Translations under genes and position numbers: made by a program | Notes under the pieces: generated by a model | The model's input: the letters and a program-made list of their open reading frames with translations, nothing else | The model's database searches: none | Told to the model about the DNA's origin: nothing | NCBI GenBank assembly: GCA_021613535.1 | Contig: CP075492.1 | Span: forward strand, 13,392,001 to 13,456,000 | Direction: 5' to 3' | From: Adineta vaga | Taxonomy: Eukaryota; Animalia; Rotifera | Length of the DNA stretch: 64,000 nt | Part shown: in pieces, positions 1,588 to 10,397 of the stretch | Layout: each line of letters begins with the position of its first letter | How positions within the stretch are numbered: the first letter of the stretch is position 1

Positions 1588-2539
1588 TCATCTGGGATGA
1601 ATTCGATGCCACACTGATAATCGACTTTTTACCGTTCGACGAAATCGATTTGATGTGATTAAAAACATATAAAAATTTCCCTGAAAGAATAGAAATGAAA
1701 ATTTAAAAAGTAAAAAATAAAACACAACTTACGACATAATAAAAATAAGATATAAGAATAAATATAGTCGAAGCTAACAATTCTTTAACAAGACGATCAA
1801 GATTTTTAACTATTTGATTCGTAAGAATATTATATGCCATATAACTTCCGTATGGAACCATACTAATGATCATCAATAGAATTTGAATCAACATCATTTT
1901 GATTAACTGTCGATCAGCTTGTTGTTCAGCAAGAATTCTTGTCAAATGAATATTTCGATACGTTAAATATCCAAATATACTCATTATTATTATTGGTACA
2001 GTACATTGAAGAACAAGAATATATATTGGCACATAGATAATATAACTATTACTGTTAGATTGACATCGATTGGTTACTGGTGAAATATCATAGGAAACAA
2101 GAACAGGAATTCCATGAAGAAACCAAATTATATTAGCGAGGAGTACAAATTTCTTTGCTCGACGAAGATCACTAAATTGTCTAAGATGTGCATGTTTTGA
2201 AGTCACCAAATATTGATCAATAACAGCTAAACATGAACAAGTCGCTGAAGTTAAACCACAATAACCGACAGAGAATTGTTGAAATCGACACCAGAATACT
2301 GAGTATTGAGCTATATTAATATCAAATATTGCATTAATGAGGCGACTGGTAAGATTAACTAATATATAAGAATTATTATATATTGAACTGATTAGAAAAA
2401 AGAATGTGCATGGTGTCGTACGATAATTCTCAACAGTAGAAAATATGAATATGTTCATTGCATTACCAAATAGACCTGCGAAATAGAGCGTTGATCCTAA
2501 ATAAATAGTTAATTGTTGACTGATATACGTCAATGACAT
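1588..2539 (-). CDS. Orphan class A GPCR, tandem paralog; 2 exons (1733-2539, 1588-1680)
   Basis: Same architecture and same intron position (1681-1732) as its neighbour. Shared motifs: MSLTYISQQLTIY, EQQADRQL, GNFYMFLITSNRFR. Confidence 0.85.
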
Positions 2540-3445: not shown

Positions 3446-6163
3446 ATGATTCAATTTAGTCGAAACATTCGTTTCTCATGTTTGTGTTTACTACTTCGAT
3501 TATTTACTTTATCGTATGTCAAAACAGATTGGCCTTCGACGAATTCATCCAACGTGAAACTGTTAGGTCTCTTTTATGATATATCAAACGTAACGGAAAC
3601 CACGACATGGTCTCTTCATGCTCGTGCGATGTTCAAGTCGGCAATCATTCTTTCTCATCGTTATAACATCACTATACAACAACATCTTATTGGATGGCAA
3701 TCAGCCCAAACTGCAGGTGATCCTATGACTGCTCTCGGAACAACATGTCAACTGATGACCAACTCCAACATTCTCGGTATCGTCGGACCTCCATTATCGA
3801 GAGAATCTGTCATTCTTGCACCGTTCGCCGCACGAGTTGGTATTCCTCATATTTCCTATGCAGCCACAGATCCGGCATTGTCTGATAGAAGTACTTATTC
3901 TACTTTCTATCGCACAGTTCCATCAGACAACACAGCTGCACTAGCCATTGCTCAGCTTTTCATTCGTTTCAACTGGACATCCACTATCATCATCTATCAG
4001 AATGATGCATATGGATCTGGTGGAGCAACAGCCATCATTGACACATTCGATCGAATGAATCTCAGTGTTGCACAATCAATCGTCTTTGACATCGTATCCA
4101 TGTCGATCCGAGGAAATCTCAAAACTCTTCTCACCTCTAGTCAAACACGCATTGTCATCTTATGGACGGAATCAAACTACGCTCGTTTGACATTAGAAGA
4201 AGCTATTCGATCCGATGTTCTTGCTCCACATTTCACCTGGATACTGAGTACAAATATTCCACTTGACAGTTTCAACAGTACTACTGACTATGAAAAGCTA
4301 AGCGGTATGCTCACAGTCGAACCAGTCGTTGGAAGTGTTGTTGGTGCATCGATTAATACTACATTGTTGACTGCAGCATTCGACATCTGGAAAGAATATG
4401 AACCAGCATCATTTCCTGGATCAGACAATGTTATGAACTATGCATTGTTCGCATTCGATGCCACTTGGATGTTGATTCAAGGTCTCGTTGAACTATGTTC
4501 ACAAACAACATCCAACATTTCATCGACATCATCATGTGTATCCTTTACAGGTGATTCATTTTGTTTCAATCGACGATTTGTACATTCAGATGAGTTCATT
4601 AATATTCTTGATCGTCGTTTGTTTCGTGGTGTAACAGGACCTGTTGAGTTCAATAGTAATACAACAGATCGAGTGGATGGAAACTATTACATTGCAAAAA
4701 ATGTACAACAATGTTCAAAAGATTTAGAGTATGTTCCAGTGTTGGTATGGTCGAATTCAGGTGATTGGACAAGGAATGCACGAACGAGTGTGATTGTATG
4801 GCCAGGCACTTCATTGAAAGTTCCTACTGGTTATATAGCAATATCTCGAGTGACTCTACAGATTGCAGTAATCGAAGCATTTCCATTCACTATAAAAAGA
4901 GAGTTTAGAAATCAATCAGGTGCAGTATTTACTAAGTTAACTGGTTATATACCTGATTTCATTGAACAATTGCAAGATTATATGCATTTTAGTGTAAATA
5001 TTACTTATTTTTCACCAGATCAGTCATATAATGAACTTGTCGATGCAGTAGCTAATGGTACTTTCGATATGTTCATTGGTGATGTCACAGTAACTTCTGC
5101 ACGAAGAGAAAAAGTCGCATTTTCAAGTACTATCTTTGATAATTCACTACGTATCATTGTACGAGAATCAGTCGATGATCAATTGAATCTTTGGTCATTT
5201 CTCAAACCATTTTCCAGTAAACTTTGGATCACTTCTTTTGCAGCAATAGTATATGCTGGATTAATAATTTCCATCATAGAAAGAGATGAAAATGAAGCTC
5301 TTCAAGATCGATCATTCATATCATTGATTGCAATGAGTATGTGGTTTTCATTTGGTACAATCACAGGATATGGTATTGATTTTCATGTTACAACAGCTGC
5401 GGGTCGTATTCTAACCATTGGGTTATATGCTTTAAGTCTAGTATTAGTTGCAACATACACTGCACATTTAACATCTGATCTGACAGTAATGAAAGCAACA
5501 AGTAGCATATCTGGAATTGATGATATTAAAAACGGAAAAGTCTCATTCGATCGTATTGGTATTCTTATTAATACCTCTGTCGAAGACTATTATTTGAGAG
5601 AGATCTCTGGTGGAAATCGGAATTTCTATCCATTAAAATCAATTGATGAACTGTTTGATGCTTTAGTAAACAACATAATCGATGTATCAATGATGGATGC
5701 TGGTATTCTAGAATATGCTACTAGTAGTACTTATTGTAATTTGACTTTAGTTGGTACAGATTTCGATCGAAATGCATTTGGAATTGTTTTTCAGAAAAAC
5801 TGGTTTTTCGAAGACGATCTTGATGTGGCTATATTATCAATAAAAGAATCAGGCATAGCGGATGATTTAAAAGTAAAATGGTTTCAATCAAGTGCTTGTA
5901 CACATTCGGATGAAACTTCTGTTGCAATGTCGATCGAGTCAATGGCTGGTTTATTTTTAACATTTACAGTAATTTGTATTTTAGGACTATTATGGTTTAC
6001 GTGGAAAAAACGATTGAGCATCAGAGATCATTTATTATTGTGGATGCAGAAGAAAAAATCATCAACTGAACGAAATGCCCCTTCGACAAAGCATTCAAAT
6101 GAATTTTTACCTAACGATGGGTCAGGTCATAAATCATCAGTGTATTCAGTTACGTATTTATAA
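3446..6163 (+). CDS. Ionotropic glutamate receptor, AvGluR1-like (LIVBP-type N-terminal domain, S1/S2 ligand-binding domain, K+-channel-like pore); intronless, 905 aa
   Basis: Signal peptide and ANF/LIVBP domain (ISYAATDPALSD, FYRTVPSD). S1 GDVTVTSARREKVAFS, pre-M1 FLKPFS, pore TITGYG, M3 ATYTAHLTSDL, S2 ending KWF..C, M4 SIESMAGLF. Confidence 0.92.
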   Translation: MIQFSRNIRFSCLCLLLRLFTLSYVKTDWPSTNSSNVKLLGLFYDISNVTETTTWSLHARAMFKSAIILSHRYNITIQQHLIGWQSAQTAGDPMTALGTTCQLMTNSNILGIVGPPLSRESVILAPFAARVGIPHISYAATDPALSDRSTYSTFYRTVPSDNTAALAIAQLFIRFNWTSTIIIYQNDAYGSGGATAIIDTFDRMNLSVAQSIVFDIVSMSIRGNLKTLLTSSQTRIVILWTESNYARLTLEEAIRSDVLAPHFTWILSTNIPLDSFNSTTDYEKLSGMLTVEPVVGSVVGASINTTLLTAAFDIWKEYEPASFPGSDNVMNYALFAFDATWMLIQGLVELCSQTTSNISSTSSCVSFTGDSFCFNRRFVHSDEFINILDRRLFRGVTGPVEFNSNTTDRVDGNYYIAKNVQQCSKDLEYVPVLVWSNSGDWTRNARTSVIVWPGTSLKVPTGYIAISRVTLQIAVIEAFPFTIKREFRNQSGAVFTKLTGYIPDFIEQLQDYMHFSVNITYFSPDQSYNELVDAVANGTFDMFIGDVTVTSARREKVAFSSTIFDNSLRIIVRESVDDQLNLWSFLKPFSSKLWITSFAAIVYAGLIISIIERDENEALQDRSFISLIAMSMWFSFGTITGYGIDFHVTTAAGRILTIGLYALSLVLVATYTAHLTSDLTVMKATSSISGIDDIKNGKVSFDRIGILINTSVEDYYLREISGGNRNFYPLKSIDELFDALVNNIIDVSMMDAGILEYATSSTYCNLTLVGTDFDRNAFGIVFQKNWFFEDDLDVAILSIKESGIADDLKVKWFQSSACTHSDETSVAMSIESMAGLFLTFTVICILGLLWFTWKKRLSIRDHLLLWMQKKKSSTERNAPSTKHSNEFLPNDGSGHKSSVYSVTYL

Positions 6164-6411: not shown

Positions 6412-10397
<3,986 letters not shown>

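Follow-up and report, generated by a model that had tools for sequence, protein, structure and literature searches.

The open reading frame (ORF) at positions 3446-6163 (+) of a 64,000-nucleotide stretch of the Adineta vaga genome (G000:C3:13392001-13456000, the window analysed here) probably encodes a functional subunit of the bdelloid-specific AvGluR family of ionotropic glutamate receptors (iGluRs). Judged from its sequence, the subunit would form a chloride-independent channel that prefers neutral amino acids, and would represent one pocket variant of a fast-changing family. AvGluR1, the textbook link between the bacterial receptor GluR0, with its K+-type pore, and animal iGluRs, is to our knowledge the only member of this family to have been studied. 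It is K+-selective and is activated by glutamate as well as by hydrophobic amino acids, with Cl- standing in for the side chain of glutamate (PMC11479355, PMC12226733). The complete, intronless coding sequence at 3446-6163, hereafter the 3446-6163 gene, comprises 905 codons plus a stop codon and contains no internal stop. Its product displays the complete iGluR domain order, from the amino-terminal domain (ATD) through the first half (S1) of the ligand-binding domain (LBD), the transmembrane helix M1, a re-entrant pore loop and M3 to the second LBD half (S2) and M4. All features described below lie on the forward strand unless indicated otherwise.

Among solved structures, the best match to this protein was the LBD of AvGluR1 (PDB 4IO2-4IO7; E 7e-81), followed by plant GLR3.4 (E 2e-57) and GluN1 (ca. 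1e-37). Together with its bdelloid relatives (see below), this match agrees with an earlier note on the same DNA, made from the letters alone, which had described an AvGluR1-type iGluR. AvGluR1 itself was located as P0073 (C3:13799363), 404 kb downstream of the 3446-6163 gene on the same chromosome, and differs from the 4IO2 crystal construct by one residue. Both genes are intronless and share the ATD-S1-M1-P-M3-S2-M4 architecture, and their products are 51% identical overall and 58% identical in the LBD, with 53% in S1 (residues 466-575; 4841-5170) and 63% in S2 (residues 687-818; 5504-5899). Over the 132 residues of S2, the AvGluR1 LBD crystal sequence (RIGIRIGTAGED) and the 3446-6163 protein (RIGILINTSVED) align without a single gap. 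In this alignment the two arginines of the AvGluR1 motifs GIRIG and KSRQE, which are residues 700 and 726 of the full-length protein, fall on Leu707 (5564-5566) and Ile733 (5642-5644), so that the AvGluR1-type arginine pair is absent. Leu707 begins a short stretch at the start of helix F (5564-5581) that continues with I-N-T-S-V where AvGluR1 has I-G-T-A-G (helix-F N-T-S-V versus G-T-A-G), and Ile733 lies in PLKSIDE where AvGluR1 has PLKSRQE. The earlier note had arrived at the same two hydrophobic replacements using the AvGluR1 motifs GIRIG and PLKSRQE, and these were correct when set against 4IO2. The motifs that it had listed were likewise found in place, namely TITGYG at exactly 5357-5374 (the full SFGTITGYG starts at 5348), ATYTAHLTS, GDVTVTSAR, and the Leu and Ile themselves.

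The residues expected to hold the backbone of an amino-acid ligand are retained, as the note had also stated for S1. Asp546-x-Thr548 and Arg553 lie within GDVTVTSAR (5078-5104), and the acidic residue Asp751 (5696-5698) lies in S2. Thr548, Arg553 and Asp751 align with the AvGluR1 crystal sequence, and the two receptors have in common the D-x-T, Arg and Asp backbone ligands, the LBD cysteine pair and a G-Y-G pore. By position, Asp546, Thr548 and Arg553 are equivalent to GluA2 Pro478, Thr480 and Arg485, which bind the alpha-amino and alpha-carboxyl groups of the ligand, and Asp751 is the counterpart of GluA2 Glu705, which contacts the alpha-amino group.

The arginine-free pocket is not distinctive of this gene. 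As the earlier note had proposed, pocket, filter and M3 were tabulated across bdelloid homologues. The homologue counts, entropy ranks and tree changes given here refer to the best 120 homologues, all of which are bdelloid or metagenomic; every named protein among them comes from a bdelloid rotifer, the organisms being A. vaga, A. ricciae, A. steineri, Rotaria and Didymodactylos. The arginine pair occurs in 27 of these proteins and is lacking in 93, a Thr filter occurs in 5 and a His gate in 2. At position 707, Leu (35) is the second commonest residue after Arg (46) and is followed by Val (14) and Ile (9), and position 733 is occupied by Arg (34), Lys (15), Glu (14), Gln (13) or Ile (8) in most proteins. 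Of about 19 alignable A. vaga paralogs, 17 are without the pair, which is confined to AvGluR1 and a single fragmentary copy. On the tree of the family, proteins with the pair gather mainly in one large clade to which AvGluR1 belongs, and the half of the tree holding the 3446-6163 gene is mostly hydrophobic at position 707. The gene itself belongs to an Adineta-only subclade of eight members that is distinct from that of AvGluR1. Since most bdelloid relatives also lack the pair, the 3446-6163 gene reads as a typical representative of a diversified family of amino-acid sensors in which an arginine-free pocket is the norm, and it is AvGluR1 that, owing to its arginine pair, stands out as the unusual one among the A. 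vaga paralogs.

In contrast to the pocket, the backbone clamp hardly varies, with Arg553 present in 120/120 homologues, Asp751 in 119/120, and Asp546 and Thr548 in 114/120 each. When the 242 LBD columns are ranked by entropy, position 733 is the second, position 712 the eighth and position 707 the 37th most variable, and the minimum number of changes on the tree is 41 at position 707 and 56 at position 733, against 0 at Arg553. Given near-invariant backbone-binding residues and pocket positions that rank among the most changeable of the domain, a diversification of amino-acid side-chain specificity is supported at the level of the family. The diversification suggested by the earlier note is thus supported for the family as a whole, with its fixed clamp and variable pocket, whereas the idea that an arginine-free pocket sets this gene apart finds no support in the counts above. 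Where position 707 is hydrophobic (n = 66), a bulky hydrophobic residue occupies position 712 in 50/66 and Phe or Tyr occupies position 782 in 39/66; where it is Arg (n = 46), position 712 is Gly or Ser in 30/46. The association between Arg707 and small residues at position 712 was not significant in phylogenetically independent pairs (median p 0.25).

Features particular to the 3446-6163 gene were found in its pore and gate, and both appear uncommon in the family. The pore-loop filter TITGYG (5357-5374) keeps the first Thr and the G-Y-G of the T-x-V-G-Y-G signature and does not match it in full, Val being replaced by Thr640 (5363-5365) at the position that holds Val or Ile in K+ channel filters; AvGluR1 has TIVGYG. 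Across the homologues, position 640 is Val in 50, Met in 39, Leu in 16, Ile in 6, Thr in 5 and Phe in 4, and with Val in only 50/120 a strict TxVGYG does not define the AvGluR family. A match to the K+-channel pore domain Ion_trans_2 at residues 629-677 stayed below threshold (E 0.007; 16.6 bits versus a cut-off of 22.5). In M3, the motif ATYTAHLTS (5450-5476) keeps the Y-T-A core of SYTANLAAF, with His674 (5465-5467) replacing the Asn (YTAHLTS versus YTANLAS in AvGluR1). Few positions of metazoan iGluRs are better conserved than this Asn, the fifth residue of SYTANLAAF (PMC6307864). The position holds Asn in 100 of the 120 homologues and Lys in 12, and His was found only in the 3446-6163 protein and in P0003 of A. 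ricciae.

The Thr filter has a counterpart outside the iGluRs. TWIK1 (K2P1.1), whose filter reads T-T-G-Y-G, has Thr at the usual Val/Ile position, as does the 3446-6163 protein with Thr640. The likeness is one of analogy, for TWIK1 belongs to an unrelated channel class, has Thr and not Ile before this residue, and is compared here with the inverted pore of an iGluR. In TWIK1, Thr118 underlies a dynamic selectivity with a switch to Na+ permeability under some conditions, and the T118I substitution locks K+ selectivity (PMC11079055). A Thr filter combined with a Leu plus Ile/Leu pocket was also observed in P0050 and P0078 (filters TITGCG and TMTGYG), which derive from metagenomic bdelloid contigs and fall in an unrelated second clade; the PLKSIDE motif of P0050 is identical to that of the 3446-6163 protein. 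Gene conversion was considered as a source of this combination and discarded, as no local rise in identity to the 3446-6163 gene was seen. The combination looks convergent, but two origins are too few for a claim.

The Thr filter and the His gate are shared with a second species. Based on gene order, P0003 of A. ricciae is the syntenic (positional) ortholog of the 3446-6163 gene; the series TBCE, ERCC1, a 7tm_1 receptor, the iGluR, GH47 and then V-ATPase a agrees with the 7tm_1 ORF at 1703-2539 (-) and the downstream GH47 fragments of the window. P0003 retains TITGYG, YTAHLTS and a Leu/Leu pocket. The ratio of nonsynonymous to synonymous divergence (dN/dS) between the two genes is 0.14 overall, 0.09 over S1b-M1-pore and 0.11 over M3-S2, as expected of a gene that is under strong purifying selection and selectively maintained. 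Since the Thr filter and the His gate are shared with P0003 under such selection, they are conserved features and not signs of decay. A pseudogene or decaying copy was ruled out by the intact frame and by the low overall ratio against the syntenic ortholog.

The picture that emerges is that of a tetrameric cation channel that would be opened by an L-amino acid. The retained residues would clamp the backbone of the ligand through its alpha-amino and alpha-carboxyl groups, and its side chain would be housed in a largely hydrophobic, uncharged pocket formed by Leu707, Val712, Ile733 and Phe782. With such a pocket, neutral amino acids, small or hydrophobic, are most likely preferred over glutamate, and there would be no need for the chloride that acts in AvGluR1 as a stand-in for the gamma-carboxylate. 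A hydrophobic-ligand, chloride-independent, non-glutamate receptor, as proposed in the earlier note, can thus reasonably be inferred, and the rapid turnover of side-chain-contacting positions is in keeping with a repertoire for chemosensing or nutrient sensing. The pore may be less strictly K+-selective than that of AvGluR1, because Thr at the same filter position makes the K+ selectivity of TWIK1 unstable. His674 probably alters gating and could give rise to proton or metal sensitivity. Co-assembly with the product of a tandem neighbour, P0002, through a shared ATD is possible.

Several points weigh against this reading. GluA2 is a receptor with Leu at the first arginine position (Leu650, a known pocket residue) that yet binds glutamate through helix F, so that loss of the arginine alone does not exclude acidic ligands. 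The two AvGluR1 S2 arginines were reportedly described as gamma-carboxylate or Cl- ligands by Lomash et al. in 2013. They are presumably the Arg676 and Arg702 reported there, numbers that residues 700 and 726 take on without a signal peptide of 24 residues; text searches of the literature found no paper naming the AvGluR1 arginine residues. The 3446-6163 protein does keep three further S2 arginines of AvGluR1 (Arg703 and the arginines of YLRE and GNRN). The two arginine positions look linked in the raw counts, with 27 double arginines among 46 Arg707 proteins, but their coupling was not significant in phylogenetically independent pairs (median p 0.375). As for the pore, Thr640 may be functionally neutral given the variability of this filter position across the family, and the M3 Asn is not inviolable, since plant GLR3.4 has Ser there.

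The alternative that best survives, although we regard it as unlikely, is that glutamate, aspartate or other polar ligands are still bound via the N-terminus of helix F (Asn709, Thr710 and Ser711; compare GluA2 Ser654/Thr655), the loss of the arginines having changed affinity and not ligand class. The alignment of the first arginine position with Leu650 of GluA2, a bona fide glutamate receptor, speaks for this possibility, as does the occurrence of Asn, Thr and Ser at the helix-F N-terminus in place of the G-T-A-G of AvGluR1. However, the equivalent of GluA2 Thr655 is Val712, which together with Ser711 reproduces the helix-F Ser-Val pair of glycine-binding GluN1, glutamate-binding subunits having Ser-Thr. 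In addition, Leu707, Val712, Ile733 and Phe782 are all hydrophobic, and no positive charge takes the place of the arginines. The comparison with GluN1, the third-best class of solved structures, has its limits, for the homology is distant, GluN1 has Trp before the alpha-amino-binding Asp where the 3446-6163 protein has Met750, and its NMDA-type Asn pore site differs from the K+-channel-type pore described here.

Part of the 3446-6163 gene has a history of its own. Upstream by 3.4 kb and in the same orientation lies a tandem paralog, P0002 (900 amino acids), which extends from G000:C3:13389305 to base 4 of the window (locus L002:1501-4203). Its pocket is Pro/Thr, its filter TITGFG and its M3 a canonical YTANLAS. 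The two genes are 81% identical overall, but sliding-window comparison revealed that this identity is highly uneven along the gene. In a first tract covering the ATD (gene nucleotides 80-1262; 3525-4707), only 8 differences were found over 1183 nucleotides (synonymous divergence, dS, 0.02). The first half of S1 (gene nucleotides 1263-1581; 4708-5026) drops to about 65% nucleotide identity (dS 1.2) and has the A. ricciae ortholog as its nearest relative. A second tract comprising the end of S1, M1 and the pore loop (gene nucleotides 1582-1976; 5027-5421) returns to about 97%, with some 11 differences over 395 nucleotides (dS 0.09), and from M3 onward identity is 75-85%. Outside the two similar tracts, the dS values are 1.2, 0.5 and 0.9. 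Trees of the two kinds of region conflict. The divergent parts unite the 3446-6163 gene with P0003 (100/100), and a grouping with P0002 does not pass the approximately unbiased (AU) test (p 1e-11); the similar parts unite it with P0002 (100/100), and the ortholog pairing is rejected (AU p 0.004), the partitions for these trees and tests having been picked after viewing the sliding-window plot.

The near-identity of the ATD and pore, the divergence of the first half of S1 and of M3 onward, and the conflicting topologies point to a recent gene conversion that homogenised the ATD and the pore of the tandem pair. Because the divergent parts pair with P0003 and not with P0002, the tandem duplication predates the split of A. 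vaga and A. ricciae, and it would be only in the assembly domain and in the pore that recent conversion has evened out the two copies. For the binding-domain and gate regions, the first of these AU tests rules out that the 81% identity stems from a recent duplication specific to A. vaga. The Thr filter of P0002 falls inside the converted tract, and the His gate of the 3446-6163 gene just outside it. A single iGluR copy is present at the P0003 locus of A. ricciae, where no second one was found, and A. steineri has two iGluR genes beside ERCC1.

This mosaic structure invites further interpretations, of which a kept modular arrangement is already rather improbable. Repeated conversion would homogenise the ATD and the pore, and selection would keep the LBD and the gate apart; the two subunits would join through their identical ATDs into a channel that responds to two amino acids, to which the subunit with the Thr filter and the His gate would lend a pH- or ligand-dependent ion selectivity. 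If this were true, bdelloids would use K+-pore iGluRs as a combinatorial array of amino-acid chemosensors. It is very unlikely that the 3446-6163 protein is a modulatory subunit that is not gated alone and whose His M3 and Thr filter tune the pore of heteromers formed with P0002 or other AvGluR subunits. In other iGluRs the ATD directs subunit assembly, and the ATD of this gene shares 99% of its DNA sequence with the ATD of P0002 while the binding domains differ; moreover, the closest A. steineri relatives lack G-Y-G, suggesting that some members cannot form a selective pore alone. Yet the backbone-binding residues and the G-Y-G of the 3446-6163 protein are all intact, the identical ATD may simply have arisen as a side effect of conversion between neighbouring genes, and AvGluR1 works as a homomer (PMC11479355, PMC12226733). 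Finally, an error of the assembly, with tandem repeats collapsed or wrongly joined, is highly improbable as the cause of the near-identity with P0002, for although each protein cluster has a single member from a single contig and no independent record of either tandem protein, with which the mosaic could be confirmed, was found in other assemblies, the tracts are imperfect (8/1183 and about 11/395 nucleotide differences) and unequal in dS (0.02 versus 0.09), and in both genes the frames stay open across all junctions, with sharp boundaries. The proposal of a neutral-amino-acid receptor is unaffected by whether the mosaic is an artefact.

Compared with other systems, the AvGluR family resembles by analogy the variant ionotropic receptors (IRs) of Drosophila and other protostomes, which are a lineage-specific, iGluR-derived expansion with a similarly rapid turnover of pocket residues. 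In contrast to IRs, which often lose the ATD and the backbone Arg, Thr and Asp, the AvGluR family keeps both, and the two groups have no close sequence relationship. Because the ATD and the near-invariant backbone residues are retained, the AvGluR family would remain a family of alpha-amino-acid receptors. Of the homologues solved at full length, plant GLR3.4 (7LZH) scores best (E 2e-57 over residues 100-855); its M3, YTASLTS, also departs from Asn, but it has no G-Y-G filter. Bacterial GluR0 shares the K+-type pore (PMC11479355) and differs in lacking the ATD and M4.

The broader meaning of these comparisons lies first in the standing of AvGluR1, whose arginine/chloride ligand scheme would be an exception among its own paralogs. 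With its fixed backbone clamp and shuffled side-chain pocket, the family offers a natural panel for the evolution of iGluR ligand specificity. The 3446-6163 gene and P0002 form a matched pair with ATD and pore in common and with different binding domains and gates, and the Thr filter and His gate are conserved natural mutations at positions relevant to selectivity and gating. Moderate interest attaches to the Thr filter and His gate, conserved as a pair, and to a gene conversion that is selective for certain domains, and current understanding will stay unchanged unless function is measured.

The A. vaga genome as a whole, loci L020, L021, L022 and L024-L026 included, contains at least 34 matches to the 3446-6163 protein, of which about 17 are full-length with an open frame. 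Several copies are damaged or incomplete, their frames being split or interrupted by stop codons. Clusters of these genes were found at 10.9-11.5 Mb of C1 and at 13.39-13.80 Mb of C3, the latter including AvGluR1. In A. steineri, the nearest relatives, P0005-P0008 (locus L027 and others), have lost G-Y-G (filters TIMGKS, GVMGAG and TIIGGG) and kept a canonical M3 and the backbone-binding residues; one copy within L027 (4338-6584) is a truncated allele of P0007.

In the Pfam scan of the 905-amino-acid protein, PF01094 (ANF_receptor), PF10613 (Lig_chan-Glu_bd), PF00497 (SBP_bac_3) and PF00060 (Lig_chan) each scored above the curated cut-off, PF01094 delimiting the ATD at residues 79-416 (3680-4693). 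The first 27 or so residues (3446-3526) probably form a signal peptide, as suggested by a hydrophobic N-terminus collinear with that of AvGluR1. By alignment, transmembrane helix M1 was placed at residues 593-611 (5222-5278; with GLR3.4, 7LZH) and M4 at residues 833-853 (5942-6004), beyond which the C-terminal tail is poorly conserved. The two iGluR genes have between them the intronless 7TM receptor ORF of the rhodopsin family at 1703-2539 (-) (278 amino acids; PF00001, E 7e-10), and A. ricciae has a 7tm_1 gene in the same place beside P0003. Downstream, GH47 (alpha-mannosidase) exons at about 6412-7664 (-) are convergent with the iGluR gene, the terminal exon ending about 250 nucleotides from the iGluR stop codon, and this arrangement is syntenic in A. 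ricciae.

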